Shown: in pieces, positions 18,397-54,325 of the stretch | How the letters are laid out: each line of letters begins with the position of its first letter | Position numbering within the stretch: the first letter of the stretch is position 1 | Origin: Lytechinus pictus | Lineage: Eukaryota | Reading direction: 5' to 3' | NCBI RefSeq assembly: GCF_037042905.1 | Contig: NC_087253.1 | Location: 8,804,001 to 8,868,000 of the forward strand | Length of the DNA stretch: 64,000 bases | Position numbers and translations under genes: made by a program | Notes under the pieces: generated by a model | Told to the model about the DNA's origin: nothing | Database searches by the model: none | The model's input: only the letters and a program-made list of their open reading frames with translations

Positions 18397-18660
18397 GGTG
18401 TATGATTTAGAAATCCGAAGAACTAGTGTTTATCCAGAACCAATAATCATGATAATGACGTTTGAACCTTTAACTCAAAGATAAGAAGAGATCCCAAATC
18501 ATTCGATTATCATATAATCATGCAGGCATATCGTTCAAACTGTCATAAAATACGTTTTACATCCTCTTTGCTTCCGTAAGTGAATGTTGGACCGTGCCTC
18601 AAGCTCATAGGGTTTTAAACACGAAGTATACACTTTCCAAGGATGTAGATGAAACATTAA

Positions 18661-19228
18661 AGGACAGTCGGATGTACAATAAGAAAGTTATGATATTTTG
18701 AAGTTTTTCTTAATTTCACAAAACAGTTATATGCACATTCTGGTCGGTAAGCAAATGAGCAGACTGATGACGTCACCCATTCACTATTTCTTTTGTGTTT
18801 TATTAAATGAAATATGAAAAACTCTCATTTTTTCCTCATTGTCATGTGAAACAAATTGTTATTCCTCCCTCAACATGTGGAATAACAGTTTTTTAATAGT
18901 TTATGGTTATAAAGTAAAAAGGTCATTATTGTCAAATCTGTAAAAATTGAAATATTGTATAACTCAAAAAAAAAAAAAAAAAAAATAGCGAGTGAGGGAC
19001 ATCATCGACTCTCTCATTTACATATCACTGAGTTATGCATCTTAGCAGTCAGGTATAAAACTTCTGTATAACATAACATAACATAACTGTTTTGTGAAAA
19101 ATAAGCGAAACTTAAAAATGTCATAAATTTCTTTTTTACATCCGATTTCGAGGAAATTTCCAGCGTTATGCTTGTTTGAACTTTCTCTAGCGATTTAAAT
19201 CAACAATTTTCTGGGGTGGACTTGACCT
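18661..19228. mobile_element. Duplicated copy of the 5734..6307 Kolobok-like MITE
   Basis: Same ends and same internal deletion as the first copy. Confidence 0.6.
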
Positions 19229-19945
19229 TCAAGTAAATTTTCATATTAATTCAGTTTTGAATCATGTGATATTCATTAAGCACGAGTATTAGATTTGTGA
19301 GGGCAGTATTGCTAAACCTGATGGAATATTTTTTCCCCCAATATTTGATGCATTTCGACAGGGGCGAATTTGTTAAAGCGTTAATCGTAGACGAAGGAAG
19401 AGATAGAGGGAGATAGAGAGAGAGAAAGAGAGTCTGAGAAAGAGATGAATTAATTACTTTTTATAATGGATTTGTTCACCTCGCAGTTTATGACCTCTGT
19501 TTCTATCCACCAGTATATTAACACAATACCTCTTCCACGGATTGGTGCCCATTATGAATATCATTTTTTTTTCCAACGCGCGACTAGACTATATGAACGT
19601 GGCAGTCTATCATACTGGATAAACCTAAAGCAAATCTACTTATTAAACATGGCGTACTGTGGGGCGCACGTTAAACACAAATGATTCCTGTAACGTTAAG
19701 CACTATATGCTACTGAAGGAAGACATTGCGTGTGTTTTTATTAGCATTCGCGTTTATGTTTTTGGACTAATATTCTGATCTGCGTCACACGATGGGGTGA
19801 ATGATGATCACAGGACTTTGTTGGAAAGGCTCTAAGGAGGAGGAGGAGGAGGATGAGGAGGCTTCAGACACTCGAGTGGTATATTTGGAGCTGGTTTGAA
19901 ACACATTTACTCGGCAACATAAACACCCGATGGGAGATCGTCAAG

Positions 19946-21477
19946 ATGGGACTACAAGTTCTGTATTGGGTTGCTGCTATTACTCTCCCTATCGTCAATC
20001 GCGACGATGTTTACGGCGATGTACCATTTAAATGACCTTAAAGAGATAAGAGCGAAGAAGAATTCTGCATTGGGCATCCGACAGCTCGAAATGAAAGGAA
20101 TCCTTCATCGTCTGGTTTGGGGGAAGCCTCAATATCCTCGGACAAGAATAGAGGTTCACCTGAGGGAGATGACGCTTTTCGGAATCTCAGTATTATATCA
20201 TTTAGATATGACACACTGTCTGTTCGTAGAAATCTAACTCACAGCATTGCTAATGTAGACGACGATGTTCTGACGTTCGATACATATGACATTTTTAAAC
20301 CACTATCGAATGTAACCAGTGAAGAAAGCAGCTTGGTTCACAAAATCTAACAAAAACAGAGAAACGCTGACTTTAACTGTGTCATCAGGATTGCCAAGTA
20401 TTGTTCCTCTCGTTGTGATTATCTAGTTAAAGGTAAACATTCGAGGGAATGGACGCCATTCAGATGTGAACTCAGTGAGTTCTGCAGGTTTGAGACTCGT
20501 TTTATAGGTAACCTCACCAAGGAGGTTATGAAGACCATCGATGTTGTTTTCTTTATACCCGGATATCGGGATGTTCGTCTGAAGCAAGTGATGGCTGCAA
20601 GACCACCAGGACAACTCTAGGTCCTCTGCGCCAAAGAGAGTCCTCAGCATGACCCAGATTATGCTCCTCGAGGTCTAACAGGAAACCCTTTCAATCTCAC
20701 CATGACGTATGTCAGGGACAGTGACATTTACTTCCCATACGCCACCGTGCGGAAGCTTGGGAAGCCAAATGAACATCCGCCAGATATTCCAAAGAAAACC
20801 AAGCTGATAGCTTGGATGGCATCCAACTGCAATCCATATTATTGGAAACGAACTGAACTAGTGAAAGCGATTCAAGGGAATATCTCAGTGGATATGTACG
20901 GCAAGTGCGGTACGGGAAGACTTGCCCATGATAAAACCATGGAGACCCTCAAGCAATATAAATTCTATATCGCGTTTGAAAATAGCGAATGCCGGGATTA
21001 CATCACGGAGAAGGTGTGGAAAAATTGCCTTTTACAGGGAATCGTACCCATCGTCTACGGATCAACGCGCGAAGGCTACGAGAAGTCACTCCCAAGGAAT
21101 TCCTTCATCTCCGTAGAGGATTTCAGTAACATGAGCGAATTTGTAGATTACATTCACGCACTGGATAAAGACGACGCGCGTTACATGAAATATTTCGACT
21201 GGAGGAGGGACGGCGCAGTGCAGTTTCACTCTCCATCTGCGTTCAGAGGTAGCAGACCGGAACTGAATTTCTGTTACCTCGTCAAAAAACTACTCCACGT
21301 CTTCGTACATCCAGAGAACACTTGGCAGAAAAGAAATCCAGATTTTGCATCTTGGTGGCGAGGGCAATGTGCCGATTATTCTATTAAGAAAATCGTTCTG
21401 GGATTCAATACCCATCGGTCAAGAGAAGAAAGGCAATCATCAATGCATCTAAGAGACGTGGTGACATAGAAATGTAG
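19946..21477 (+). pseudogene. Alpha-1,3-fucosyltransferase pseudogene (paralog of 7000..8559)
   Basis: 8-nt and 22-nt deletions near the 5' end; CAA->TAA at 20348; TGG->TAG at 20618; 1-nt deletion near 21430. The catalytic-half ORF 20702..21469 is still open. Confidence 0.92.
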
Positions 21478-21959
21478 TTGGTGTAATTAATTGATATGAA
21501 AAGCCATCGAGATGTTATCATGCTAAAAAGATCTGGTTAGAGTTCTACCTTGAATATATAGGTCTAAGTACATCATGCGAGTTATTTGAGAATTCGTTTG
21601 ACATGTTGGAAATAACGACAGTTTATGATAAGACAGTCCGCGAAATTCGAAGTTATAATTGATGCGCGATGAGATACAGAGCCGTATCAACACCTCTGGT
21701 TCAACTGGAAGGGACAGGAATAGTGAACTTGCCAATATTCGATACTGGCCTACAAGAGAACCCCTCTCTTTATATTACAAGATTCTAATTAATGCAGTAG
21801 CTGTATTGTAATGGGAATATCTTAATTAGTTTCTCAAGTTATTCGGAAATGATGTTTAAACAGACTGTGATGCAGAAATGTGGAATAAAAAATATATATT
21901 ATGTTCTAACTGCTAAAGAAGCAAAGAAATTCAAAACAAATTTTTGAGAATATACTTAG

Positions 21960-22523: not shown

Positions 22524-24930
22524 TTAACTATAAAATACTTTCAGACCCTTATCAAAGAGAAATGTGAAATTGGCCGATCATGTAAAATTCAATTTATTTG
22601 ACATAACAGGAAAATACATAGTTTTATGCATTTCTACGCTAAACGATTTTAGTATTTTACATTTGCTTCTCAATTGGCCAGAATTCGTGATGTCATGCCG
22701 TGTTAGGAAGATTGTGGTAAGCATGACTAAAATTGGTTTGAAAATCTTGATTGTTATTCATTATTCTTTCCAGATTAGGCCTATATTCAATAGGCCTATC
22801 ACCATATGAAAATTTCATGAAAATCATTTCCTGCATAAAACTGGCATTATTGTGCTTGGTAGCTTTGTTTTCTATTTCTAAATGTAACTCCGGTTGTTCG
22901 GTCTTCTAATTTAGTAGATGAATTAATATTGTATGATGTGGTTATGGGGTCCGTTGCATAAAAGTCACTATTGTGTTAACTTTGCCATCCAATGGTAACT
23001 ACTATACCATGGTAACGATGATCAACAACCAATCAAAATCAAGGATTCAATGCAGGTTACCATTGCATGTCAAGGTTACCATAATGGTTGCTTTTTTGCA
23101 ACAGGGCCCTGGTATTCTTTGTTACTTTTTAGAAGGAAACAGGGTAAAATAAGTTGCGATGGAAATTTTGCTTGAAATAAGAAAGAAAGATATTCTGACT
23201 TTTAGTATAAACCGAAGCTTAATACGCCACTGGTCTGAGGGTCCCTTTTGTCATTTTTAATAAAAAATACTGGCAATAGTTATGATGCAACATAGTACTG
23301 AACGTGTAGCGCATGAGTTTTCATTTCTCAGTCTTTTCTCAAAATGTCACCTGGATCAGGCTTGAAATCAATTGGTCATAATAACCCAATTCACCCTTTC
23401 AAAATATTCATGAGATTAAATACAGAAAATACAAGAAAGCTCACATTGCAAATAAGATAAAAATCGGATAAATAAAGATTTATGACATTCTATTTTTTTT
23501 TTTTTTTTTTTTTTTACAAATGTATTCACACATCAGTGATCTACATATCATTGGCGGTAATGTAGATTACGCAGATGAAGGAAACTTTAAAAGTGTCATA
23601 ATAATCTAGAACGATTTTGATGAAATATTAATGAGCATTTTGAGTTTTCTTATGTTATTCAGGAAATTAATTTGTTACCCTGGGTAAAATATGACATTAT
23701 CATCACTAAATCTATTTAAATCAGTTTGTTTTGTCGACGGACGTGGTCATACAGAGTGTTGATTAGAATGTATAGAGGGGCAGTTGGGGTGGGGAGAATA
23801 AGAGAGACGAGAGAGAGAGAGAAAGAGAGAGAGCGTGATAAAGAGGGGGGGAGATAGAGGGATGATTGCGTGTTACCATATTTATTACATAATGTAAATG
23901 ATTTCCTCAATTAATATCATTTTGTTGTTGGATTTCTCAATAAAACGCCTATACTATATTCTAATGGTGAAACCCGGGATAACATAAGACGAAACAAAAG
24001 AGCCACCCCCCAAAAAAGTCCTCACCAATTTTTATGATATTAAAGGTCAAGTCCACCCCCAGAAAAAAAAGTTGAATAAATAGAAAAAAAATCAAGCTAG
24101 TATAACACTGAAAATTTTATCAAAATCGAATGTAAAAAAAAGTTATGACATTTTAAAGTTTCGCTTATTTTTAACAAAACAGTTATTTGCACAATTCAGT
24201 AAAATGTAAATGAGACACTCGATTACGACCCTCCCTCACTAATCATTTTGCTTTTTATTGTTTGAATATTTCATTTTTTTATAGATTTGGCAATACGGAC
24301 CAACTTGACTGACAATGAGTAGAACATTTTCAAATTTCATATAATAAAATACAAATATTAAAAAAAATTGATAGTGGATGACTTGCATACCGACCAGGAT
24401 GTGTGTGTGTACGTCTCTGAGCTGTGTGTTTATTGCAGAAAATGGCGCAAATTTTGCAATTCGAAAGAAGAAATTAATGATATTGCTTTTTTGTCTCTTT
24501 TTCTTTTCTATATTTTGATGGTGAAATATGGGGAATCTTTCTAAAATATAATTTCCATAGGAGAATTTTGCTTGCCCGATTCTTTGCTTCAAAACACTTG
24601 CCCGACTCTAACTTTTACTTGCCCCGGGCAATCGGGCCAGCGCTTATGTCGCACCCTGCTCTAAGGTGCATTTCCCTTTTCAACATATCCGGTGGAATGT
24701 TTTACCTTTCATTTTTTTATTTGATTAAAATGTATTTCCTAAACACCTTCACAGGAGAAAACGGCGAATATTTGTCATTGAAAATAATTTTTTGGGAGGG
24801 CTAATTTGAGATGTCATAGGGATGTTGAAGGGTTGCATCGACTATATCGATCTTGTACAAGCTTTATATAATCATGATGATAAAAGAAGAAAAAAAAATT
24901 GAAATAAACAACGTTTCATTACGAAGTTAC

Positions 24931-25332
24931 CTCCTGGCGATTCAGTTGAACTTATATTAGGCTCAGTCGTTGATACTGTTGGTGGTGACGAAATGATATC
25001 TGAGTCATTTGTTATCATCTGCCCTTCTGTCGATATCATCATCGAAGTGTTTTCAGCGTCACTTGTCGTATCGGACACTGTCATCGTCGAAGTCGTAGAT
25101 ATCGTTGCATTGTCCGAGACATTGAACATGGTTGTTGGCAATGTCGTCGATGATGATATATTGTCTGTTGTAAAGACCATGGTCGATGACGTCACATTTT
25201 CTTTAGTATTCGACATCGTTGCGGACACCGGGTCAGTAGTCGTTGAATTATCGGCAGTAACCATCGATTTTGTTGAATTCATCGTTGTTGAGCCCAATCC
25301 ACTCGAAGAAGTTGGCGAACCGGTATCAGATT
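24931..25332 (-). CDS. Second coding exon of a Thr/Ser-rich mucin-like secreted or membrane protein
   Basis: Acceptor TTCAG and donor G|GTAACT; 402 nt, phase 1-1; T/S/D-rich with N-x-S/T sequons; phase-compatible with the exon at 29491..30082. Confidence 0.75.
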
Positions 25333-25834
25333 CTGAAGTTTTAAATAGATATTCTTTCATTACGTACGATTTTGGTATAACACATGAGAGTGTCGCTCGG
25401 AAGAAGGGGGTATGGGCGCTGCGGGGGGGGGGGCGGGCGGGCGGGCTTCTAAGTAATTAATTCAAAGGGTCGTAAATAGACTTGAAATTGTGAGAATTCA
25501 ACATAATAAAAAAAAAACGGGTTTCCTGCACCATTTTCGTAAAGAGTATGAGATGAGATAGAGTCACCCTTAGTTGTTGTTTTTGTTGATGTGTGTGTGG
25601 GCGTTTCATGTGTGATAAGCATCATAGGCCATGCACCGCTTTTAAGCCGTTCACAGTAAGAAACTGAAAGTCATGCCCAGCTTTAGTCAACATCCACAAT
25701 ACCGAGTATCGAGGATTTTATTCATCGAAAGTTAAAGATCGATACGTTGCAAAAGTAACATCAAAATCGTATTAGGAATGTGTGCAATGGAGGGTACAAA
25801 ATTGAAAATTCGATAAAGGCCACTGCAGACCCTA

Positions 25835-28022: not shown

Positions 28023-29490
28023 TTAATTCTGTCATAATCACAAACACGTTCAATTTATGTAAGAGCTGACGCAGCAGGCAAAAAACATGATCATAGAAGA
28101 TGTGAAAACATTGTGATCAAAATACAAATTGGTTGAATAGACACATGGAATTATTTGAACCAGTGTTTCCACTTTGAAGGAAATTTCCCGAAATCCGGAT
28201 CATTTTCAGGTAATTTTCGGGGAAATGAACAAATTCTAGGAAATTCCGGGAAATCAGAAAATTACAATCAAACGTAGCAACTTTCAATATTCATGTAAAA
28301 AAAATGTTTGCCTTATACGTAGCTCAAAATTTTCTACTCGCGCTCCGCGCTCACATTTTGTAATTTTGCTATTTTCAATTAAAAAGTGCATTTAACAAAA
28401 AAGGTTAAATTCCTTGATTTTGGTCACTTGGACCAAGTTTTGGCTCGCTTTGTTATTGCCCGATTTTTCTTTAAAAAATAAAGTTTCAAGATTCCGGAAA
28501 ATGTCTATGAATTTCAGGAAATTTGAGATTCTGTTTCGAGAAATCTCTTGCTGAATTCCTTGGACTTTATCATACTTTTTCATTTTGTCATTGTAAAATT
28601 ATACATGCTACATGCAGGCGTAAAACATAGGAAACTGCGTGTAAGATTTGTTTTTATTATTATCATAAGCGTCCATCCAGATTCCAGCAAACCGAATTGA
28701 TATTTTATTTAGAATCTAGGATTCGCTCTTATTTTATAAACGTTCACTTAGTTGAACATTGAGGTGTCCAGAAACCACTGAACAGGCCTACCCAGCAGTA
28801 TGAAATAAATAAAATATCATAAATAATAGACAAAATAATAAATAAAGACAAACAAACCCAACTCTCCTCACACTTCTACAGATACATGCGCTTAAAAAAA
28901 AATCAGTGATCAAAGGATAGCTAGTTTGTGTTAAAAAAAAAACAATACGAACATGTAACATGACTAGGGAGGATTTGCAAGAAAATATTTGCAATAATCT
29001 GCAAATTTTCAAGTTATAAGTCAAATTTAACTGAAGCAAATCAATTAATAAAATAGTTATTGATGCAAGAAGCAGACCAGGGCCCCGTCTTACAAAAACT
29101 TACGATTGATCAGATCAATCTCAAATATATGGAAATCTATCATTGTTTTCTTTAGGAACTTCATTCTATTTTCATTGAAAACAACAAGAAGCATTCCGAT
29201 TTGTCAAGAAAACAGTGAATGTGTGAATATACGTCATTTATGTAAAATATTTTGAACCAACAAGTATTTTAGATATTGATGCTGTTGGCTTTCCATAGTT
29301 ACGATTGATCAAATCAATCGCAACTCTTTGTAAGACGGGATTCAACATTTCAAGTGCAAATTTACAATTAATTGTAAGACTGAATATGGTTGATTTTAGG
29401 ACCAATAATTGACCTGTAATCGATTGCAAATTTCTTGCGAAACCCCATATGAGTTAAAAATTAATTGAAATCAAAGAAACTGCACATTAC

Positions 29491-30082
29491 CAGTTGTTGA
29501 TGGCAACATCGTGGTAGTATTCATGTCCACTGTGGCCATGGTGGGGGATGTTGTATTGTCGGGTTCTGTAGTATTACTGTTTATTGTGGTCATGATGGAA
29601 GTAGGGGTTGTGACATTCATGGTAACACCTGTTGTAGAACTCCCTGAATCTGTGGTAGCGGTGGTATCTGAATCCGTTGCGTTATTTGTTGCGGTGAACT
29701 CTGCGTCAGTGGTTGATGTAGGAGTTGTTTCATTCATGGTACCATCTGTTGTAGAACTCCCTGAATCTGTGGTAGTGGTGGTATCTGTGGTAGTGGTATC
29801 CGTTGCGTTATATGTTGTGAAGGACCCAGCGTCAGTGGTATTCGATGTTGTCATGATTTGGGTAGATGTTGTCGAGGAGTATGTGGATGAAGACTCCATG
29901 CCAGACGTTGGGATAGGAGACATTGTTTCTGTTGTGTCGACAGTAGCATCCATTGTTGATGGAGAAGTGTTAGTACCATTTGTAGGCATGTCAGTTGTGG
30001 TTGTTGCCGCGATATCCAACGAAGAATATGATACGATTAAAACTAGGACAGCCACCCGCCTTGCAATCCGGCAGCTAACCAT
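29491..30082 (-). CDS. Mucin-like gene first coding exon, copy 1 (signal peptide + Thr-rich stalk)
   Basis: Kozak CCACCATG; MVSCRIARRVAVLVLIVSYSSLDIA signal peptide; Thr-rich; donor G|GTAATG (phase 1); acceptor TTTATAG 20 nt upstream of the ATG. Confidence 0.8.
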
Positions 30083-31430
30083 GGTGGTGGACTTTCCTCA
30101 ATCTATAAAGCAATCAAAGATTTTAAAACAATGAACTAAGTTGTATTTTTTTTAATAACATAACGATTTAAGAAGCATGCAAAGGTTGCCACTATAAGCT
30201 CAGCTTTACTGCGTGGCAACCCCGGAAAACAATATCAAATTATAATTAATAATGCTGTCTTAAAGTAAGAGTGCAGATGTATACAACCGCGTAGCCAGGA
30301 TTTCATTTTGGAGGAGGCGGTAAATGGACGCGAAGCGTGCCAACACTTACAGAGCGCGCGAAGCGCGCTCCCTAGGTGGTGGGTGCAGGGAGAAGCTTTT
30401 GGTGTTTTGGTGTTTCATAAATTAAAATGAAAAGGAGCCGTCTCTCTTGTCTCTAGTACCTATATCAGCTCCAATTCAGTTGATTATATTGTTATTTTGA
30501 ACCTTGTTTTCATGAACCTTGTATTAAAAAAAAAATTGTGAACGCACAAAAAATGAATACAATGGAGGAAATTAAAATAATAATAACCCCGCGCGAAGCG
30601 CGGAAGCTTTAGCGTTTTATCAAATTTTTTGCCATGAAAAGGGTCCCGAGAAAAGGGTATTCTCAAACATAAATTATATTGAGTACTTCCCCTGGAAAGA
30701 TCAGATTTGATTACAAACAATTTAGCGACAGTGCATATCTTTAACTCGCAAAACAGAGGAGGAGAAGTGTATATGCCGGGGGAAGATATTCCTCCCCGCG
30801 CAGAGCAACGAAACTCTGAAATTTCAAAGGGCGGACGTTTCATCAAATGCAGATATCTCCAATACCCCATCGGCTCTGATTTAATTAATTTTCTAAGATT
30901 ATTGAACTTCATTACACGGAAAATAGTGCGCAAAAAGTTGAAACTTCTGTGATTTATTGAAATTATATAAAAAAGGATGCCTAATTTCTTTGACTTATCC
31001 TGAAGCGCTTCATTTTGAATTATAAAGAAACTTAAAAGACATTCAACATTTCAAACTGAAGGCGAAAAACAGGACATGAGATGAATGCGCAGGGACATGA
31101 AGTTTAATAGAATTTGATAAAGAATATTGTACTTTTTTATTTAATACGACACAAATTTTATACCTTCCTCTTTTTAAATTAGGAACCTGTTTGCCCCAAA
31201 ATTATGGTTGTTTAGTAATGAGTTGAAAAGCGGAAGAAGTTGCCTTCATGGAGGTGACGGCAGAAATTGATATAAATATTTTACCCGCCCGGAGCCGACC
31301 CGACCAGAAGTTGCGCGATCAATAAAAAAAAAGATAACTTCATATACTTGGGCCTAACCTTACTCTAATTCTATGCCCTAATGTATACATTTGAACTTTA
31401 ACTGGCAAGAAAAACATATTGCTGAGGTGG

Positions 31431-31668
31431 GCTGAGCCTTACTTACACTAACTTCCCTTTGTGTCTGCCTACTCCTTTTCTTTCATCCCCTTCACTAACC
31501 TGATTGGTCTTCTCTACTCACTAATGCCCATTTTGTCTCCTTGTTTCTAGTGTTGCTGTAGCTTGTTTGTGGTCTATATTATGGTTGTTCCACTTTCTAT
31601 GTTTGTCATTTTGCCTCCGACGAAGATTCTGCTAGGATCGAAAGCTTAGGCCCCTTTTTGACTTTATA
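31431..31668 (+). mobile_element. 238-bp junction spacer, probable Penelope-like retroelement terminal fragment (also 35066..35303 and 38899..39136)
   Basis: Found only between array copies, not at the outer flanks; pyrimidine-rich and ends in a hammerhead-like motif. Confidence 0.6.
31613..31651 (+). ncRNA. Minimal type I hammerhead ribozyme-like motif
   Basis: GCCU-CCGACGA-A-GAUUCU/GCU/AGGAUC-GAAA-GC-UU-AGGC: stem I GCCU/AGGC, core variant of CUGANGA (U4->C), 6-bp stem II, GAAA, palindromic AGCU stem III. Confidence 0.6.
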
Positions 31669-33125
31669 ATAATCACAAACACGTTCAATTTATATAAGAG
31701 CTGACGCAGCAGGCAAAAAACATGATCATAGAAGATGTGAAAACATTGTGATCAAAATACAAATTGGTTGAATAGACACATGGAATTATTTGAACCAGTG
31801 TTTCCACTTTGAAGGAAATTTCCCGAAATCCGGATCATTTTCAGGTAATTTTCGGGGAAATTAACAAATTCTAGGAAATTCCGGGAAATCAGAAAATTAC
31901 AATCAAACGTAGCAACTTTCAATATTCATGTAAAAAAAATGTTTGCCTTATACGTAGCTCAAAATTTTCTGCTCGCGCTCCGCGCTCACATTTTGTAATT
32001 TTGCTATTTCCAATTAAAAAGTGCATTTAACAAAAAAGGTTAAATTCCTTGATTTTGGTCACTTGGACCAAGTTTTGGCTCGCTTTGCTATTGCCCGATT
32101 TTTCTTTAAAAAATAAAGTTTCAAAATTCCGGGAAATGTCTATGAATTTCAGGAAATTTGAGATTCTGTTTCGAGAAATCTCTTGCTGAATTCCTTGGAC
32201 TTTATCATACTTTTTCATTTTGTCATTGTAAAATTATACATGCTACATGCAGGCGTAAAACATAGGAAACTGCGTGTAAGATTCGTTTTTATTATTATCA
32301 TAAGCGTCCATCCAGATTCCAGCAAACCGAATTGATATTTTATTTAGAATCTAGGATTCGCTCTTATTTTATAAACGTTCACTTAGTTGAACATTGAGGT
32401 GTCCAGAAACCAATGAACAGGCCTACCCAGCAGTATGAAATAAATAAAATATCATAAATAATAGACAAAATAATAAATAAAGACAAACAAACCCAACTCT
32501 CCTCACACTTCTACAGATACATGCGCTTAAAAAAAAATAAGTGATCAAAAGATAGCTAGTTTGTGTTAAAAAAAAAACAATACGAACATGTAACATGACT
32601 AGGGAGGATTTGCAAGAAAATATTTGCAATAATCTGCAAATTTTCAAGTTATAAGTCAAATTTAACTGAAGCAAATCAATTAATAAAATAGTTATTGATG
32701 CAAGAAGTAGACCAGGGCCCCGTCTTACAAAAACTTACGATTGATCAGATCAATCTCAAATATATGGAAATCTATCATTGTTTTCTTTAGGAACTTCATT
32801 CTATTTTCATTGAAAACAACAAGAAGCATTCCGATTTGTCAAGAAAACAGTGAATGTGTGAATATACGTCATTTATGTAAAATATTTTGAACCAACAAGT
32901 ATTTTAGATATTGATGCTGTTGGCTTTCCATAGTTACGATTGATCAAATCAATCGCAACTCTTTGTAAGACGGGATTCAACATTTCAAGTGCAAATTTAC
33001 AATTAATTGTAAGACTGAATATGGTTGATTTTAGGACCAATAATTGACCTGTAATCGATTGCAAATTTCTTGCGAAACCCCATATGAGTTAAAAATTAAT
33101 TGAAATCAAAGAAACTGCACATTAC

Positions 33126-33717
33126 CAGTTGTTGATGGCAACATCGTGGTAGTATTCATGTCCACTGTGGCCATGGTGGGGGATGTTGTATTGTCGGGTT
33201 CTGTAGTATTACTGTTTATTGTGGTCATGATGGAAGTAGGGGTTGTGACATTCATGGTAACACCTGTTGTAGAACTCCCTGAATCTGTGGTAGCGGTGGT
33301 ATCTGAATCCGTTGCGTTATTTGTTGCGGTGAACTCTGCGTCAGTGGTTGATGTAGGAGTTGTTTCATTCATGGTACCATCTGTTGTAGAACTCCCTGAA
33401 TCTGTGGTAGTGGTGGTATCTGTGGTAGTGGTATCCGTTGCGTTATATGTTGTGAAGGACCCAGCGTCAGTGGTATTCGATGTTGTCATGATTTGGGTAG
33501 ATGTTGTCGAGGAGTATGTGGATGAAGACTCCATGCCAGACGTTGGGATAGGAGACATTGTTTCTGTTGTGTCGACAGTAGCATCCATTGTTGATGGAGA
33601 AGTGTTAGTACCATTTGTAGGCATGTCAGTTGTGGTTGTTGCCGCGATATCCAACGAAGAATATGATACGATTAAAACTAGGACAGCCACCCGCCTTGCA
33701 ATCCGGCAGCTAACCAT
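33126..33717 (-). CDS. Mucin-like first coding exon, copy 2
   Basis: Same translation and splice sites as copy 1. Confidence 0.7.
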
Positions 33718-35247
33718 GGTGGTGGACTTTCCTCAATCTATAAAGCAATCAAAGATTTTAAAACAATGAACTAAGTTGTATTTTTTTTAATAACATAACG
33801 ATTTAAGAAGCATGCAAAGGTTGCCACTATAAGCTCAGCTTTACTGCGTGGCAACCCCGGAAAACAATATCAAATTATATTTAATAATGCTGTCTTAAAG
33901 TAAGAGTGCAGATGTATACAACCGCGTAGCCAGGATTTCATTTTGGAGGAGGCGGTAAATGGACGCGAAGCGTGCCAACACTTACAGAGCGCGCGAAGCG
34001 CGCTCCCTAGGTGGTGGGTGCAGGGAGAAGCTTTTGGTGTTTTGGTGTTTCATAAATTAAAATGAAAAGGAGCCGTCTCTCTTGTCTCTAGTACCTATAT
34101 CAGCTCCAATTCAGTTGATTATATTGTTATTTTGAACCTTGTTTTCATGAACCTTGTATTAAAAAAAAAATTGTGAACGCACAAAAAATGAATACAATGG
34201 AGGAAATTAAAATAATAATAACCCCGCGCGAAGCGCGGAAGCTTTAGCGTTTTATCAAATTTTTTGCCATGAAAAGGGTCCCGAGAAAAGGGTATTCTCA
34301 AACATAAATTATATTGAGTACTTCCCCTGGAAAGATCAGATTTGATTACAAACAATTTAGCGACAGTGCATATCTTTAACTCGCAAAACAGAGGAGGAGA
34401 AGTGTATATGCCGGGGGAAGATATTCCTCCCCGCGCAGAGCAACGAAACTCTGAAATTTCAAAGGGCGGACGTTTCATCAAATGCAGATATCTCCAATAC
34501 CCCATCGGCTCTGATTTAATTAATTTTCTAAGATTATTGAACTTCATTACACGGAAAATAGTGCGCAAAAAGTTGAAACTTCTGTGATTTATTGAAATTA
34601 TATAAAAAAGGATGCCTAATTTCTTTGACTTATCCTGAAGCGCTTCATTTTGAATTATAAAGAAACTTAAAAGACATTCAACATTTCAAACTGAAGGCGA
34701 AAAACAGGACATGAGATGAATGCGCAGGGACATGAAGTTTAATAGAATTTGATAAAGAATATTGTACTTTTTTATTTAATACGACACAAATTTTATACCT
34801 TCCTCTTTTTAAATTAGGAACCTGTTTGCCCCAAAATTATGGTTGTTTAGTAATGAGTTGAAAAGCGGAAGAAGTTGCCTTCATGGAGGTGACGGCAGAA
34901 ATTGATATAAATATTTTACCCGCCCGGAGCCGACCCGACCAGAAGTTGCGCGATCAATAAAAAAAAAGATAACTTCATATACTTGGGCCTAACCTTACTC
35001 TAATTCTATGCCCTAATGTATACATTTGAACTTTAACTGGCAAGAAAAACATATTGCTGAGGTGGGCTGAGCCTTACTTACACTAACTTCCCTTTGTGTC
35101 TGCCTACTCCTTTTCTTTCATCCCCTTCACTAACCTGATTGGTCTTCTCTACTCACTAATGCCCATTTTGTCTCCTTGTTTCTAGTGTTGCTGTAGCTTG
35201 TTTGTGGTCTATATTATGGTTGTTCCACTTTCTATGTTTGTCATTTT

Positions 35248-35286
35248 GCCTCCGACGAAGATTCTGCTAGGATCGAAAGCTTAGGC
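35248..35286 (+). ncRNA. Hammerhead-like motif, junction 2
   Basis: Identical to 31613..31651. Confidence 0.6.
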
Positions 35287-36760
35287 CCCTTTTTGACTTT
35301 ATAATAATCACAAACACGTTCAATTTATATAAGAGCTGACGCAGCAGGCAAAAAACATGATCATAGAAGATGTGAAAACATTGTGATCAAAATACAAATT
35401 GGTTGAATAGACACATGGAATTATTTGAACCAGTGTTTCCACTTTGAAGGAAATTTCCCGAAATCCGGATCATTTTCAGGTAATTTTCGGGGAAATTAAC
35501 AAATTCTAGGAAATTCCGGGAAATCAGAAAATTACAATCAAACGTAGCAACTTTCAATATTCATGTAAAAAAAATGTTTGCCTTATACGTAGCTCAAAAT
35601 TTTCTGCTCGCGCTCCGCGCTCACATTTTGTAATTTTGCTATTTCCAATTAAAAAGTGCATTTAACAAAAAAGGTTAAATTCCTTGATTTTGGTCACTTG
35701 GACCAAGTTTTGGCTCGCTTTGCTATTGCCCGATTTTTCTTTAAAAAATAAAGTTTCAAAATTCCGGGAAATGTCTATGAATTTCAGGAAATTTGAGATT
35801 CTGTTTCGAGAAATCTCTTGCTGAATTCCTTGGACTTTATCATACTTTTTCATTTTGTCATTGTAAAATTATACATGCTACATGCAGGCGTAAAACATAG
35901 GAAACTGCGTGTAAGATTCGTTTTTATTATTATCATAAGCGTCCATCCAGATTCCAGCAAACCGAATTGATATTTTATTTAGAATCTAGGATTCGCTCTT
36001 ATTTTATAAACGTTCACTTAGTTGAACATTGAGGTGTCCAGAAACCAATGAACAGGCCTACCCAGCAGTATGAAATAAATAAAATATCATAAATAATAGA
36101 CAAAATAATAAATAAAGACAAACAAACCCAACTCTCCTCACACTTCTACAGATACATGCGCTTAAAAAAAAATAAGTGATCAAAAGATAGCTAGTTTGTG
36201 TTAAAAAAAAAACAATACGAACATGTAACATGACTAGGGAGGATTTGCAAGAAAATATTTGCAATAATCTGCAAATTTTCAAGTTATAAGTCAAATTTAA
36301 CTGAAGCAAATCAATTAATAAAATAGTTATTGATGCAAGAAGTAGACCAGGGCCCCGTCTTACAAAAACTTACGATTGATCAGATCAATCTCAAATATAT
36401 GGAAATCTATCATTGTTTTCTTTAGGAACTTCATTCTATTTTCATTGAAAACAACAAGAAGCATTCCGATTTGTCAAGAAAACAGTGAATGTGTGAATAT
36501 ACGTCATTTATGTAAAATATTTTGAACCAACAAGTATTTTAGATATTGATGCTGTTGGCTTTCCATAGTTACGATTGATCAAATCAATCGCAACTCTTTG
36601 TAAGACGGGATTCAACATTTCAAGTGCAAATTTACAATTAATTGTAAGACTGAATATGGTTGATTTTAGGACCAATAATTGACCTGTAATCGATTGCAAA
36701 TTTCTTGCGAAACCCCATATGAGTTAAAAATTAATTGAAATCAAAGAAACTGCACATTAC

Positions 36761-37352
36761 CAGTTGTTGATGGCAACATCGTGGTAGTATTCATGTCCAC
36801 TGTGGCCATGGTGGGGGATGTTGTATTGTCGGGTTCTGTAGTATTACTGTTTATTGTGGTCATGATGGAAGTAGGGGTTGTGACATTCATGGTAACACCT
36901 GTTGTAGAACTCCCTGAATCTGTGGTAGCGGTGGTATCTGAATCCGTTGCGTTATTTGTTGCGGTGAACTCTGCGTCAGTGGTTGATGTAGGAGTTGTTT
37001 CATTCATGGTACCATCTGTTGTAGAACTCCCTGAATCTGTGGTAGTGGTGGTATCTGTGGTAGTGGTATCCGTTGCGTTATATGTTGTGAAGGACCCAGC
37101 GTCAGTGGTATTCGATGTTGTCATGATTTGGGTAGATGTTGTCGAGGAGTATGTGGATGAAGACTCCATGCCAGACGTTGGGATAGGAGACATTGTTTCT
37201 GTTGTGTCGACAGTAGCATCCATTGTTGATGGAGAAGTGTTAGTACCATTTGTAGGCATGTCAGTTGTGGTTGTTGCCGCGATATCCAACGAAGAATATG
37301 ATACGATTAAAACTAGGACAGCCACCCGCCTTGCAATCCGGCAGCTAACCAT
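36761..37352 (-). CDS. Mucin-like first coding exon, copy 3
   Basis: Same translation and splice sites as copy 1. Confidence 0.7.
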
Positions 37353-38007
37353 GGTGGTGGACTTTCCTCAATCTATAAAGCAATCAAAGATTTTAAAACA
37401 ATGAACTAAGTTGTATTTTTTTTAATAACATAACGATTTAAGAAGCATGCAAAGGTTGCCACTATAAGCTCAGCTTTACTGCGTGGCAACCCCGGAAAAC
37501 AATATCAAATTATATTTAATAATGCTGTCTTAAAGTAAGAGTGCAGATGTATACAACCGCGTAGCCAGGATTTCATTTTGGAGGAGGCGGTAAATGGACG
37601 CGAAGCGTGCCAACACTTACAGAGCGCGCGAAGCGCGCTCCCTAGGTGGTGGGTGCAGGGAGAAGCTTTTGGTGTTTTGGTGTTTCATAAATTAAAATGA
37701 AAAGGAGCCGTCTCTCTTGTCTCTAGTACCTATATCAGCTCCAATTCAGTTGATTATATTGTTATTTTGAACCTTGTTTTCATGAACCTTGTATTAAAAA
37801 AAAAATTGTGAACGCACAAAAAATGAATACAATGGAGGAAATTAAAATAATAATAACCCCGCGCGAAGCGCGGAAGCTTTAGCGTTTTATCAAATTTTTT
37901 GCCATGAAAAGGGTCCCGAGAAAAGGGTATTCTCAAACATAAATTATATTGAGTACTTCCCCTGGAAAGATCAGATTTGATTACAAACAATTTAGCGACA
38001 GTGCATA

Positions 38008-38203
38008 CACTCTTAAAAATGTTGGGCAACATACGGTCCACACAACAATTGGTTAAAACTTTATCCAATTCTGGGTAGTTTTACACCAATACTGTGTAGT
38101 TTTCACCCAAAGCACACATTATTGGTGTAAAACTACCCAGAATTGGATAAAGTTTTAACCAATTGTTGTGTGGACCGTATGTTGCCCAACATTTTTAAGA
38201 GTG
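38008..38203. mobile_element. 196-bp foldback MITE with CACT...AGTG ends and TA TSD (array copy 3)
   Basis: 84-bp perfect TIRs; the empty site GTGCATATCTTT is seen in copies 1-2. Confidence 0.93.
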
Positions 38204-39080
38204 TATCTTTAACTCGCAAAACAGAGGAGGAGAAGTGTATATGCCGGGGGAAGATATTCCTCCCCGCGCAGAGCAACGAAACTCTGAAATTTCAAAGGGC
38301 GGACGTTTCATCAAATGCAGATATCTCCAATACCCCATCGGCTCTGATTTAATTAATTTTCTAAGATTATTGAACTTCATTACACGGAAAATAGTGCGCA
38401 AAAAGTTGAAACTTCTGTGATTTATTGAAATTATATAAAAAAGGATGCCTAATTTCTTTGACTTATCCTGAAGCGCTTCATTTTGAATTATAAAGAAACT
38501 TAAAAGACATTCAACATTTCAAACTGAAGGCGAAAAACAGGACATGAGATGAATGCGCAGGGACATGAAGTTTAATAGAATTTGATAAAGAATATTGTAC
38601 TTTTTTATTTAATACGACACAAATTTTATACCTTCCTCTTTTTAAATTAGGAACCTGTTTGCCCCAAAATTATGGTTGTTTAGTAATGAGTTGAAAAGCG
38701 GAAGAAGTTGCCTTCATGGAGGTGACGGCAGAAATTGATATAAATATTTTACCCGCCCGGAGCCGACCCGACCAGAAGTTGCGCGATCAATACAAAAAAA
38801 GATAACTTCATATACTTGGGCCTAACCTTACTCTAATTCTATGCCCTAATGTATACATTTGAACTTTAACTGGCAAGAAAAACATATTGCTGAGGTGGGC
38901 TGAGCCTTACTTACACTAACTTCCCTTTGTGTCTGCCTACTCCTTTTCTTTCATCCCCTTCACTAACCTGATTGGTCTTCTCTACTCACTAATGCCCATT
39001 TTGTCTCCTTGTTTCTAGTGTTGCTGTAGCTTGTTTGTGGTCTATATTATGGTTGTTCCACTTTCTATGTTTGTCATTTT

Positions 39081-39119
39081 GCCTCCGACGAAGATTCTGC
39101 TAGGATCGAAAGCTTAGGC
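39081..39119 (+). ncRNA. Hammerhead-like motif, junction 3
   Basis: Identical to 31613..31651. Confidence 0.6.
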
Positions 39120-40593
39120 CCCTTTTTGACTTTATAATAATCACAAACACGTTCAATTTATATAAGAGCTGACGCAGCAGGCAAAAAACATGATCATAGA
39201 AGATGTGAAAACATTGTGATCAAAATACAAATTGGTTGAATAGACACATGGAATTATTTGAACCAGTGTTTCCACTTTGAAGGAAATTTCCCGAAATCCG
39301 GATCATTTTCAGGTAATTTTCGGGGAAATTAACAAATTCTAGGAAATTCCGGGAAATCAGAAAATTACAATCAAACGTAGCAACTTTCAATATTCATGTA
39401 AAAAAAATGTTTGCCTTATACGTAGCTCAAAATTTTCTGCTCGCGCTCCGCGCTCACATTTTGTAATTTTGCTATTTCCAATTAAAAAGTGCATTTAACA
39501 AAAAAGGTTAAATTCCTTGATTTTGGTCACTTGGACCAAGTTTTGGCTCGCTTTGCTATTGCCCGATTTTTCTTTAAAAAATAAAGTTTCAAAATTCCGG
39601 GAAATGTCTATGAATTTCAGGAAATTTGAGATTCTGTTTCGAGAAATCTCTTGCTGAATTCCTTGGACTTTATCATACTTTTTCATTTTGTCATTGTAAA
39701 ATTATACATGCTACATGCAGGCGTAAAACATAGGAAACTGCGTGTAAGATTCGTTTTTATTATTATCATAAGCGTCCATCCAGATTCCAGCAAACCGAAT
39801 TGATATTTTATTTAGAATCTAGGATTCGCTCTTATTTTATAAACGTTCACTTAGTTGAACATTGAGGTGTCCAGAAACCAATGAACAGGCCTACCCAGCA
39901 GTATGAAATAAATAAAATATCATAAATAATAGACAAAATAATAAATAAAGACAAACAAACCCAACTCTCCTCACACTTCTACAGATACATGCGCTTAAAA
40001 AAAAATAAGTGATCAAAAGATAGCTAGTTTGTGTTAAAAAAAAAACAATACGAACATGTAACATGACTAGGGAGGATTTGCAAGAAAATATTTGCAATAA
40101 TCTGCAAATTTTCAAGTTATAAGTCAAATTTAACTGAAGCAAATCAATTAATAAAATAGTTATTGATGCAAGAAGTAGACCAGGGCCCCGTCTTACAAAA
40201 ACTTACGATTGATCAGATCAATCTCAAATATATGGAAATCTATCATTGTTTTCTTTAGGAACTTCATTCTATTTTCATTGAAAACAACAAGAAGCATTCC
40301 GATTTGTCAAGAAAACAGTGAATGTGTGAATATACGTCATTTATGTAAAATATTTTGAACCAACAAGTATTTTAGATATTGATGCTGTTGGCTTTCCATA
40401 GTTACGATTGATCAAATCAATCGCAACTCTTTGTAAGACGGGATTCAACATTTCAAGTGCAAATTTACAATTAATTGTAAGACTGAATATGGTTGATTTT
40501 AGGACCAATAATTGACCTGTAATCGATTGCAAATTTCTTGCGAAACCCCATATGAGTTAAAAATTAATTGAAATCAAAGAAACTGCACATTAC

Positions 40594-41185
40594 CAGTTGT
40601 TGATGGCAACATCGTGGTAGTATTCATGTCCACTGTGGCCATGGTGGGGGATGTTGTATTGTCGGGTTCTGTAGTATTACTGTTTATTGTGGTCATGATG
40701 GAAGTAGGGGTTGTGACATTCATGGTAACACCTGTTGTAGAACTCCCTGAATCTGTGGTAGCGGTGGTATCTGAATCCGTTGCGTTATTTGTTGCGGTGA
40801 ACTCTGCGTCAGTGGTTGATGTAGGAGTTGTTTCATTCATGGTACCATCTGTTGTAGAACTCCCTGAATCTGTGGTAGTGGTGGTATCTGTGGTAGTGGT
40901 ATCCGTTGCGTTATATGTTGTGAAGGACCCAGCGTCAGTGGTATTCGATGTTGTCATGATTTGGGTAGATGTTGTCGAGGAGTATGTGGATGAAGACTCC
41001 ATGCCAGACGTTGGGATAGGAGACATTGTTTCTGTTGTGTCGACAGTAGCATCCATTGTTGATGGAGAAGTGTTAGTACCATTTGTAGGCATGTCAGTTG
41101 TGGTTGTTGCCGCGATATCCAACGAAGAATATGATACGATTAAAACTAGGACAGCCACCCGCCTTGCAATCCGGCAGCTAACCAT
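40594..41185 (-). CDS. Mucin-like first coding exon, copy 4
   Basis: Same translation and splice sites as copy 1. Confidence 0.7.
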
Positions 41186-41386
41186 GGTGGTGGACTTTCC
41201 TCAATCTATAAAGCAATCAAAGATTTTAAAACAATGAACTAAGTTGTATTTTTTTTAATAACATAACGATTTAAGAAGCATGCAAAGGTTGCCACTATAA
41301 GCTCAGCTTTACTGCGTGGCAACCCCGGAAAACAATATCAAATTATATTTAATAATGCTGTCTTAAAGTAAGAGTGCAGATGTATA

Positions 41387-43039
41387 CAACCGCGTAGCCA
41401 GGATTTCATTTTGGAGGAGGCGGTAAATGGACGCGAAGCGTGCCAACACTTACAGAGCGCGCGAAGCGCGCTCCCTAGGTGGTGGGTGCAGGGAGAAGCT
41501 TTTGGTGTTTTGGTGTTTCATAAATTAAAATGAAAAGGAGCCGTCTCTCTTGTCTCTAGTACCTATATCAGCTCCAATTCAGTTGATTATATTGTTATTT
41601 TGAACCTTGTTTTCATGAACCTTGTATTAAAAAAAAAATTGTGAACGCACAAAAAATGAATACAATGGAGGAAATTAAAATAATAATAACCCCGCGCGAA
41701 GCGCGGAAGCTTTAGCGTTTTATCAAATTTTTTGCCATGAAAAGGGTCCCGAGAAAAGGGTATTCTCAAACATAAATTATATTGAGTACTTCCCCTGGAA
41801 AGATCAGATTTGATTACAAACAATTTAGCGACAGTGCATACACTCTTAAAAATGTTGGGCAACATACGGTCCACACAACAATTGGTTAAAACTTTATCCA
41901 ATTCTGGGTAGTTTTACACCAATACTGTGTAGTTTTCACCCAAAGCACACATTATTGGTGTAAAACTACCCAGAATTGGATAAAGTTTTAACCAATTGTT
42001 GTGTGGACCGTATGTTGCCCAACATTTTTAAGAGTGTATCTTTAACTCGCAAAACAGAGGAGGAGAAGTGTATATGCCGGGGGAAGATATTCCTCCCCGC
42101 GCAGAGCAACGAAACTCTGAAATTTCAAAGGGCGGACGTTTCATCAAATGCAGATATCTCCAATACCCCATCGGCTCTGATTTAATTAATTTTCTAAGAT
42201 TATTGAACTTCATTACACGGAAAATAGTGCGCAAAAAGTTGAAACTTCTGTGATTTATTGAAATTATATAAAAAAGGATGCCTAATTTCTTTGACTTATC
42301 CTGAAGCGCTTCATTTTGAATTATAAAGAAACTTAAAAGACATTCAACATTTCAAACTGAAGGCGAAAAACAGGACATGAGATGAATGCGCAGGAACATG
42401 AAGTTTAATAGAATTTGATAAAGAATATTGTACTTTTTTATTTAATACGACACAAATTTTATACCTTCCTCTTTTTAAATTAGGAACCTGTTTGCCCCAA
42501 AATTATGGTTGTTTAGTAATGAGCTGAAAAGCGGAAGAAGTTGCCTTCATGGAGGTGACGGCAGAAATTGATATAAATATTTTACCCGCCCGGAGCCGAC
42601 CCGACCAGAAGTTGCGCGATCAATAAAAAAAAAGATAACTTCATATACTTGGGCCTAACCTTACTCTAATTCTATGCCCTAATGTATACATTTGAACTTT
42701 AACTGGCAAGAAAAACATATTGCTGAGGTGGAAAAACAGGGTTAGAGAAAGGTTGGGGGAAACAATGGAGATCTTCAATATTGTCATTAACCGCGCGCAG
42801 CGCGGAAGCAAAACTCATATATAAATTTAGAGCAAGAGTGAAGGAGTTTCTCTTTTGAGAAAAAAAATAAAGAATAAAAAGAAAAAAACCAAAGCTACCT
42901 TTCTTCCCTTTCCTCCCTTCCCTTTTCCTTTTCTCCTCTCTTTTTTTCCCTTCGTTTTTTTTTTTTTTTTTTTTAGGGGGGGGGACTGTTTTTTTTTGGG
43001 GGGGCGACCGCTCCCACCGCCCCCCTGGCTACGCGCCTG
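41387..43039. mobile_element. hAT-like non-autonomous element, complete only in array copy 4
   Basis: CAACCGCGTAGCCAGG / CCTGGCTACGCGCCTG ends; 8-bp TSD GATGTATA (41379-41386, 43040-43047); internal GCGCGAAGCGCG hairpins. Confidence 0.85.
41841..42036. mobile_element. Same 196-bp foldback MITE (array copy 4)
   Basis: Same sequence and position as in copy 3. Confidence 0.93.
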
Positions 43040-53910: not shown

Positions 53911-54325
53911 GTGAGCTCTAGCTAGCTATTTCGTTATTTTTTAAAGATGCTCTGAACGAACATTCGATAGGTATGAATATAAATAAATACTTAAATATGA
54001 ATGCTTTTTTCCCCTTCAATTTGATAAATGCTTGCGTTTTGAAGAAGACAGTGCAGATGACAACTCAGACACAATGGTTATTAGTTAATGGAGGCGTTTG
54101 CATTCATAAACTTTCTCCGACATAGACAGTGATTATGATAATAAACTCATACTTGCCATCCGATTGCTCATCAAACAGCAGTACCGGGACAAATAAAGAT
54201 AGTCAATTAAAAGACACATGTCAAGGACTACCAGAACTTGTCACTTTCTCTCCTTTCCCACCTTCATGTTTTCAGATGATTTCCAATTACTAATTTTCTC
54301 CCATTATTTTGTTTTTTATTTGTAG

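Follow-up and report, generated by a model that had tools for sequence, protein, structure and literature searches.

A Penelope-like element fragment at the joints of a four-copy gene array in the sea urchin Lytechinus pictus: a probable retroelement-bridged tandem duplication

The chromosome sequence CM073234.1 of the sea urchin Lytechinus pictus (assembly GCA_037042905.1) contains a tandem array in which four copies of a host segment, each with a small gene for a mucin-like protein, are separated by three copies of a 238-bp spacer. Where does this spacer come from, and how did it get between the copies of the array? Both questions were addressed in the N-free stretch of 64,000 nucleotides around the array (about 8.804-8.868 Mb), which we call the window. 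An earlier interpretation (the sequence-only reading) had proposed that a Penelope-like element (PLE) brought in the spacer together with a minimal hammerhead ribozyme, that its insertion duplicated the target, and that the array might be transcribed and cleave itself into unit-length RNAs. Our results suggest that a PLE insertion probably bridged the founding tandem duplication and that the array then expanded by unequal crossing-over, with the hammerhead motif as a likely passenger.

The host segment is 3,397 bp long, and its copies were 99.5-99.97% identical in a self-comparison of the window. The periods of the array are 3635, 3635 and 3833 bp. Copies 3 and 4 are longer by 198 bp, which correspond to a miniature inverted-repeat transposable element (MITE) of 196 bp and its 2-bp TA target duplication. 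Junction alignment and self-comparison showed the spacer three times, solely between the copies, and a sensitive BLAST search of the rest of the window, including both outer flanks, gave no further copy (best E=0.29). At the right end, copy 4 runs on without a spacer into the remainder of a non-autonomous hAT-like element. The terminal inverted repeats of this element match at 14 of 16 bases and gave one clear solution across the right breakpoint. Since this breakpoint (42731/42732) falls inside a transposon that is whole, with its 8-bp target duplication, only after the last copy, the locus was ancestrally present in one copy and had no spacer. In all these points, namely the three spacers restricted to the joints, the spacer-free flanks, the hAT element that is complete only past the last copy and the single-copy ancestor, the sequence-only reading was borne out.

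The spacer was found to resemble the 3' end of a PLE. From its sixth base on, it is 90-92% identical to the 3' terminal ~235 nucleotides of PLEs of Lytechinus variegatus. The aligned part runs, depending on the copy, from base 6-8 to base 233-238 (~230 nucleotides), and the matches lie at 7010-7235 and, as an inverted copy on the minus strand, at 1244-1474 of locus L003, and at 8186-8414 of locus L004. In L003 and L004, the spacer-like sequence is located downstream of the open reading frame (ORF) of the element and shares its orientation. The ORF of L003 is uninterrupted over 908 codons and has a reverse transcriptase domain (RVT_1) and a GIY-YIG match (E=7.7e-4; 20.2 bits, with a Pfam cut-off of 22.6). 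An inverted, 5'-truncated copy with a short 'tail' lies upstream of it, a short direct pseudo-LTR (long terminal repeat) is present, and the 3' and inverted arms are alike at 98-100%. This type of layout matches the descriptions for PLEs (PMC8557442, PMC3846280). A CX4CXXC motif ahead of the GIY-YIG domain was observed in these elements, and such a linker is a trait of the Neptune and Nematis clades (PMC8557442).

When metagenome contigs were scanned with a 24-mer of the hammerhead motif described below, one match was obtained, the 3.6-kb marine contig L002. It encodes an ORF of 661 amino acid residues with RVT_1 and GIY-YIG domains, the latter passing the Pfam cut-off. About 780 bp downstream of this ORF, a 92-nucleotide stretch is 85% identical to the spacer and contains a canonical motif with the core CUGAAGA. 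A search with the L002 ORF gave thousands of relatives, among them several annotated L. variegatus proteins with 87-91% identity and others from Diadema, Strongylocentrotus, Asterias, Amphiura and Apostichopus. No Penelope coding sequence was found elsewhere in the window by tblastn with a PLE protein, and no Penelope domain among its larger ORFs by a Pfam scan, where the matches were those of a long interspersed nuclear element (LINE; endonuclease and reverse transcriptase) and of a zf-RVT ORF. The spacer itself has no reverse transcriptase or endonuclease ORF and represents only the last ~235 nucleotides of a heavily 5'-truncated element; such fragments are common among PLEs (PMC8557442). 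Judged by this homology, the spacer is foreign and of Penelope-like origin, as had been claimed, and the linkage to GIY-YIG and reverse transcriptase ORFs that was expected from a homology search was found in L003 and L004.

The ends of the spacer were then compared with those of the elements. In a multiple alignment, the copies that end an element (the 3' copy of L003, L004 and L002) lose their mutual similarity directly after ...GACTCTCTAAT, while copies preceding another unit (the upstream and inverted copies of L003, and L005) run on past this point into the PLE 5' region. Therefore, the 3' terminus of the element is at this point. The 3' end of the spacer (...GACTTTATA/AT...) coincides with this terminus, and its last 2-4 nucleotides can be assigned to the element or to the target (microhomology). 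At the 5' end, the first five bases, GCTGA, are outside the homology, which begins at base 6. They copy the target sequence GCTGA(G) 10 nucleotides upstream, which makes a templated filler of 5-6 nucleotides at this junction. On either side of the spacer, the host segment ends without alteration (...GCTGAGGTGG and ATAATCAC...). No short direct repeat was found around the spacer; the direct repeat that flanks it is the 3,397-bp segment. The left flank of the array meets copy 1 at the base at which the following copy joins the 3' end of each spacer. One retroelement insert, intact at its 3' end, is located exactly at the novel joint and is missing from the outer flanks. An intact 3' end and a truncated 5' end with a few templated bases are characteristic of target-primed reverse transcription that end joining has completed.

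We propose that a PLE insertion bridged the founding tandem duplication and that unequal crossing-over then expanded the array, a course of events that we consider probable. A PLE of the family common to the Lytechinus species, with a reverse transcriptase, a CX4CXXC linker of the Neptune and Nematis type and a GIY-YIG endonuclease after it, would have started its insertion at 28033/28034 by target-primed reverse transcription, primed on the minus strand and beginning at the RNA's 3' end. Only ~235 nucleotides would have been copied before the 5' end of the cDNA was joined, with the 5-6 nucleotides of templated filler, to a plus-strand end at 31430, 3,397 bp downstream. This end may have been a distant second-strand break or a break in the sister chromatid. 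Fill-in would then have led to the arrangement host-spacer-host. Formally, this tandem duplication is a target-site duplication of 3.4 kb whose joint contains the PLE fragment.

Direct precedent for such a mechanism comes from L1 biology, and it is the most economical reading of the duplication. Bridging of L1 cDNA to a downstream break in the sister chromatid results in direct tandem duplications with microhomology or insertions of 1-33 bp at the 5' junction (PMC7058536). The L1 tandem duplications of human tumours resemble the L. pictus array in the short insert at the joint of a direct duplication, truncated at its 5' side and with the 3' end intact, in the model of a cDNA joined to a second DNA end downstream, and in the microhomology or the few inserted bases at the 5' side. 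They differ from it in that a PLE with a GIY-YIG nuclease and no poly(A) would have been at work here, in the germline, with the product present in an assembled sea urchin chromosome. Also, the duplication is 3.4 kb and not megabases long and was followed by an expansion through unequal crossing-over. The geometry, a 3,397-bp direct duplication around the insert, agrees with the claim of the sequence-only reading that the insertion created a ~3.4-kb target duplication; the four-copy state, however, requires two later unequal crossovers.

These later steps can be read from the differences between the copies. The alignment of the four units showed 16 substitutions in total, and copy 4 differs from copies 1-3 at 2 sites near the right end. 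The pattern fits the order X, Y-X hybrid, Y-X hybrid, Y. Copies 2 and 3 are hybrids that are copy-4-like on the left and copy-1-like on the right, a pattern of the kind produced by unequal crossing-over between two diverged founders. The founders differ at 15 of 3,397 positions (0.44%); therefore, the founding duplication is older than the expansion to four copies. The MITE, with arms of 98 nucleotides that are 97% complementary, has its empty site in copies 1 and 2, where a TA is found at 30736-30737 and 34371-34372. Because the MITE is present only in copies 3 and 4, the crossovers occurred on either side of the MITE site, and therefore in two separate events. In the proposed scenario, two copies would have diverged at the 15 sites and one of them would have gained the MITE, after which two unequal crossovers between copies would have generated the two hybrid middle copies, the spacer being copied each time. 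The identical spacers are copies of a single original spacer, and with the MITE as a marker, the recombination events can be put in order.

Several points weigh against a duplication bridged by a PLE. The known target duplications of PLEs are short, 8-10 bp in Adineta vaga (PMC3846280), and 3.4 kb is far beyond this. The order of events and the mechanism are deduced from one assembled haplotype. The assignment to a PLE family is based on the sister species and on metagenome contigs, with the spacer as the sole L. pictus copy retrieved. Moreover, a filler of 5-6 nucleotides is compatible with end joining of any kind, at a staggered break as well as in sister-chromatid bridging. The duplication could also go back to template switching in replication or to the repair of a double-strand break, in which a free end of PLE cDNA or RNA was captured as filler between 31430 and 28034, with no endonuclease-primed reverse transcription. 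Such a capture would account for the templated bases at the 5' junction, the 2-4 nucleotides of microhomology at the 3' junction and the missing short target duplication of the conventional type, and these junction signatures are typical of end joining (PMC7058536). What argues against it is the 3' end of the spacer, which is the PLE terminus of independent copies, as is predicted by priming from the RNA 3' end; a random capture needs a coincidence here, or a full 3' end on the captured molecule. We regard the capture as unlikely.

Still other explanations have difficulties with the joint itself. If a plain tandem duplication came first and the PLE fragment landed later on its junction, it must have hit the exact junction base without a target duplication, whereas PLE insertions normally duplicate 8-10 bp (PMC3846280), and the bases flanking the spacer are the unaltered host-segment ends. 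No specific observation supports this order of events, and its probability is minimal. An assembly artefact that accounts for the array wholly or in part, for example by haplotypes stitched in tandem, could be suspected from the 99.5-100% identity of the copies, from the high heterozygosity of sea urchin genomes and from the RefSeq protein of the gene, which differs from the window ORF by 6% and a frameshift. Stitching, however, would not join the copies with a foreign PLE fragment at a breakpoint inside a transposon, and between the copies there are ordered differences of a recombination-like type, besides the presence or absence of the MITE. An artefact is extremely improbable. Two candidate histories were rejected. 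An insertion at either outer boundary before the duplication would have left the spacer at the left flank or inside the complete hAT-like element, where it is not found, and the same spacer-free left flank and complete hAT-like element speak against a retrotransposition of a host-plus-spacer RNA back into the locus. Since the outer boundaries are spacer-free and the adjoining bases are unaltered host-segment ends, an insertion before or after the duplication is unlikely. Bridging by a PLE during the duplication is the reading that we follow below.

Each spacer carries a motif of the string GCCU, CCGACGA, A, GAUUCU-GCU-AGGAUC, GAAA, GC, U and U17, then AGGC. In the standard hammerhead numbering, helix I is formed by GCCU/AGGC (4 bp) and followed by the core C3 C4 G5 A6 C7 G8 A9 and one unpaired A. 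Helix II (GAUUCU/AGGAUC, 6 bp) has the loop GCU, and G12 A13 A14, A15.1 G15.2 C16.2 U16.1 and U17 complete the motif. The predicted cleavage site is after U17 at 31647. The sequence-only reading had described the spacer as ending in a hammerhead. The motif is present exactly as it was written there, but it sits 21 nucleotides before the spacer end. Its core corresponds to the consensus at all positions except position 4, with C-C-G-A where the consensus is C-U-G-A. The features that are listed for Penelope minimal hammerheads beyond the search descriptor (PMC4209133) are all present: the extra A between 9 and 10.1, the G10.1-C11.1 pair, the palindromic 15.2-16.2 (AGCU), and a short helix I with a long helix II.

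A relaxed descriptor, allowing one core mismatch and an extra base, matched only the three spacer copies on both strands of the window, and on simulated windows of equal dinucleotide make-up it gave a match in 1 of 300. The same descriptor found the motif downstream of or flanking Penelope ORFs in 14 fetched loci, and its matches outside Lytechinus were canonical in the core. A covariance model (R1) was built solely from Diadema, Apostichopus and metagenome copies, without any Lytechinus sequence. It matched the three spacers with 65.7 bits (E=5.7e-15), with nothing else in the window better than E=0.7, and it also matched loci of L. variegatus (L019), Asterias (L007) and Strongylocentrotus purpuratus (L020). 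In ten distinct sequences, 99.2% of the pair cells were standard pairs, which was reached by none of 500 shuffles, and slid controls were at most 53% paired. Double changes were observed at four pairs: C3-G8 to U3-A8 in Asterias, 10.3-11.3 (UA/AU/CG), 10.5-11.5 (CG/UA) and 15.2-16.2 from GC to CG, by which the palindrome AGCU becomes ACGU in relatives. The 4 bp of helix I are invariant across the relatives. Positions 7 and 17 vary within the consensus, with A, C or U at each, a G at 7 in Asterias and never a G at 17.

The curated Rfam hammerhead models gave no match, neither in the whole window at the gathering threshold nor in slices of 501 and 75 nucleotides at E<=10. Since the Rfam models also miss the canonical-core relatives L002 and L009, their silence was not counted against the motif. 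As a single strand, the motif folds no more stably than shuffled sequences (z=-0.26), which is expected for a minimal hammerhead without helix III. By descriptor, covariance model and covariation, the motif is a member of a conserved, structurally constrained family of Penelope hammerheads, of the minimal type I with a palindromic helix III, as had been proposed. Like the published Penelope minimal hammerheads (PMC4209133), it is of type I with a 4-bp helix I, a 6-bp helix II, the unpaired nucleotide between A9 and G10.1 and the G10.1-C11.1 pair, and has no real helix III but an A-G-C-U palindrome able to pair between two copies. In both cases, the motif is found near the 3' end, in the pseudo-LTR of an element with reverse transcriptase and GIY-YIG domains, most genomic copies being solitary on truncated elements. 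The difference is the C4, present here in all Lytechinus copies and in one Asterias copy, and the host DNA that separates the motifs in place of the ORF of the element.

Some of the related copies have features of their own. In two Tara Oceans copies (L009, 2295-2518; L010, 682-905), two hammerheads on opposite strands face each other ~120 nucleotides apart upstream of the ORF, which is the inverted pseudo-LTR arrangement described for Penelope elements. The Asterias amurensis copy (L007, 5097-5147) combines the known U3-A8 core covariation with C4. The S. purpuratus copy (L020, 5068-5118) has two compensatory changes in helix II and a GCAA replacing GAAA and is probably a decayed copy.

The C at core position 4 was found in the L. 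pictus spacer and in all five L. variegatus copies examined (6 of 6 in Lytechinus), including both copies flanking the intact 908-aa ORF of L003, and in the Asterias copy. The relatives from Diadema, S. purpuratus, Apostichopus and the metagenomes have U4. Because C4 is common to all Lytechinus copies, it is a family trait and not a decay private to this copy. U4C is known as a natural variant with considerably reduced cleavage in vitro, yet enough for viroid infectivity (PMC3088659), and mutations in the CUGA turn lead to low activity (PMC9901934). The Penelope minimal hammerheads showed no detectable cleavage as single motifs and a low one as dimers (PMC4209133). With this published record, a strong self-cleavage of the C4 variant should not be assumed. 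Within this Penelope family, which has a young look in Lytechinus, C4 is the standard form and flanks an intact 908-aa ORF, and this bears on the question whether minimal ribozymes need canonical catalytic activity at all. Directly 5' of helix I (31584-31612), a TATA-like box (CTATATTATGG) was noted ~24 nucleotides upstream of an initiator-like TCATTTT, and L002 has a perfect TATATAA at the position of this box. The TATA-like and initiator-like motifs are common only to the close relatives and missing in the Apostichopus and Tara copies, and a promoter is not claimed.

Could the array nevertheless work as a giant, gene-carrying retrozyme? It would have to be transcribed on the plus strand, and the hammerheads would have to pair as dimers and cut the RNA into 3.6-kb units. 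The covariation places the motif in a family under structural selection, its spacing of 3.6-3.8 kb is near the ~3 kb of hammerheads flanking full PLEs (PMC4209133), and since an intact PLE ORF of L. variegatus has U4C on either side, the variant is compatible with an element of apparently young age. In a rotifer, mobilisation of host genes lying between PLE repeats is known (PMC3846280), and the TATA-like and initiator-like motifs are located just upstream of the hammerhead, though kept only in close relatives. On the other hand, the minimal hammerheads of PLEs cleave undetectably as single motifs and weakly as dimers (PMC4209133). U4C considerably lowers cleavage in vitro (PMC3088659), and mutations of the CUGA turn result in low activity (PMC9901934). 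The array occupies the locus of origin, where it is contiguous with both flanks, and two unequal crossovers fully account for its growth. Metazoan non-LTR retrozymes (PMC7229834; bioRxiv 10.64898/2026.07.22.740005) also consist of tandem units, each with a type I hammerhead related to the PLE pseudo-LTR. Their monomers, however, are 170-400 nucleotides long, non-coding and found as circular RNAs, whereas the units here (3,635-3,833 bp) are ~10 times the size of such monomers (PMC7229834) and consist mainly of host DNA that includes a gene on the other strand; the 238-bp PLE fragments are never adjacent. The self-cleaving, exon-carrying giant retrozyme of the sequence-only reading is not supported by any observation made here, and the weak published activity, the U4C and the size of the unit speak against it; we regard it as speculation and as highly improbable.

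A related idea concerns the two inner units. With the order spacer, host gene, spacer, they might be a newly formed host-gene cassette framed by Penelope terminal segments with hammerheads, and the starting structure for a Penelope-mediated gene mobilisation of the rotifer type. If transcribed on the plus strand, such a cassette could be processed at its hammerheads and copied elsewhere by a Penelope reverse transcriptase. We consider this very unlikely; if true, it would connect a tandem duplication bridged by a retroelement with the origin of retrozyme-like elements that carry genes. In Adineta vaga (PMC3846280), a complete host gene is likewise located between two direct PLE terminal segments, and PLE activity helps to raise the gene copy number. 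There, a cassette with an NRPS gene (for a synthetase of non-ribosomal peptides) moved by transposition to another site, with an 8-bp target duplication, whereas the L. pictus units are at the parental locus, arisen by duplication and recombination, with no sign of movement. If the bridging by a PLE is correct, the locus is a sequence-resolved germline case in which a PLE duplicated a whole gene in tandem on the kilobase scale, and the subsequent growth of the array can be followed in single-nucleotide differences and the MITE. It would also illustrate one simple way for host genes to become framed by Penelope elements, as seen in Adineta vaga.

The outcome for the host is four copies of a gene for a secreted, Thr-rich protein. 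The sequence-only reading had spoken of a copied host exon. Host coding sequence is indeed duplicated, but it comprises a complete ORF of 203 codons, i.e. a whole small gene and more than an exon of one. Its coding sequence forms one exon that lies entirely within the unit, and each copy retains ~1.35 kb upstream and 1.44 kb downstream of the ORF, with the hAT-like element beginning ~200 bp upstream of the start codon. The sole database relative of the ORF is the L. pictus protein of LOC129280401 (P0067, 168 aa), with 94% identity over 149 residues. The last 19 residues of P0067 are encoded directly beside the aligned part in another frame (window 29577-29636 against P0067 residues 149-168), such that the two differ by a frameshift after residue 149 and by 6% of the residues before it. 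Either the alleles of this gene in the two assemblies are quite far apart, or the two are different paralogues. Neither the 203-aa ORF nor P0067 had an exact match in the contig index. The most likely consequence of the array at present is the fourfold presence of this small gene, possibly with a dosage effect, and not an RNA processing driven by the ribozyme, the hammerhead motif probably being a passenger from the PLE 3' end. The features of the array are collected in Table 1.

Table 1. Features of the array and its surroundings (window coordinates)
Feature	Position	Strand	Description	Basis
Tandem array	28034-42731		4 host-segment copies and 3 spacers	Self-BLAST, repeat families, junction and four-copy alignments
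Putative first-strand nick and priming site	28033-28034	-		Geometry of the junctions
Host copy 1 (type X)	28034-31430		13 sites differing from copies 2-4, 12 within the first 1,040 bp	Four-copy alignment
Host copy 2 (hybrid)	31669-35065		Left like copy 4, right like copy 1, without MITE	Four-copy alignment
Host copy 3 (hybrid)	35304-38898		Left and MITE like copy 4, right like copy 1, 1 private single-nucleotide difference	Four-copy alignment
Host copy 4 (type Y)	39137-42731		MITE and 2 private sites in the right part	Junction and four-copy alignments
Spacer 1	31431-31668	+	Filler 31431-31435, Penelope-like part 31436-31670	Alignment to L. variegatus
Spacer 2	35066-35303	+	Same sequence as spacer 1	
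Spacer 3	38899-39136	+	Same sequence as spacer 1	
Penelope-type minimal type I hammerhead motif, spacer 1	31613-31651	+		Descriptor, covariance model R1, covariation
Hammerhead motif, spacer 2	35248-35286	+		Descriptor, covariance model
Hammerhead motif, spacer 3	39081-39119	+		Descriptor, covariance model
MITE, two copies	38008-38203; 41841-42036		196 bp, near-perfect palindrome, TA target duplication	
Non-autonomous hAT-like element	41387-43039		8-bp duplication GATGTATA, terminal repeats CAACCGCGTAGCCAGG / CAGGCGCGTAGCCAGG	Script for terminal inverted repeats and 8-bp duplication
Truncated 5' parts of hAT-like element	30284-31430; 33919-35065; 37554-38898		In copies 1-3	
203-codon ORF	29471-30082	-	Signal peptide, then Thr/Ser-rich mucin-like sequence; complete, inside the host unit	
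Identical ORF copies	33106-33717; 36741-37352; 40574-41185	-		

Other genes and repeats were noted in the window. A Thr/Ser-rich ORF of 162 codons (24872-25360, minus strand), 2.7 kb to the left of the array, is ~38% identical to the array gene, which suggests an older local paralogue of the mucin-like gene. Further to the left, an alpha-1,3-fucosyltransferase gene is located on a 3-kb segment that is duplicated with 93% identity (5621-8589 and 18551-21507). The first copy has a full ORF of 519 aa (7000-8559), 99% identical to an L. pictus protein; the second has only a 255-aa ORF (20702-21469) and may be a truncated copy or a pseudogene. To the right of the array, an ORF of 974-990 codons (54280-57249, plus strand) consists mostly of diverged tandem repeats of ~84 bp, or 28 residues (...PPADLSKGVIYPPTSNRSDAEQILPES...), followed by a unique C-terminal part containing Cys and His, and gave no significant Pfam match. 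The LINE-type retrotransposon mentioned above (188-4794, minus strand) has an ORF for an apurinic/apyrimidinic (AP) endonuclease at 3151-4794 and an RVT_1 ORF at 1827-3287. The plus-strand zf-RVT ORF lies beside it (188-1792), and both are unrelated to the Penelope fragment. Finally, the segment 45139-46567 contains three tandem copies of a unit of ~472-485 bp with 86-97% identity.

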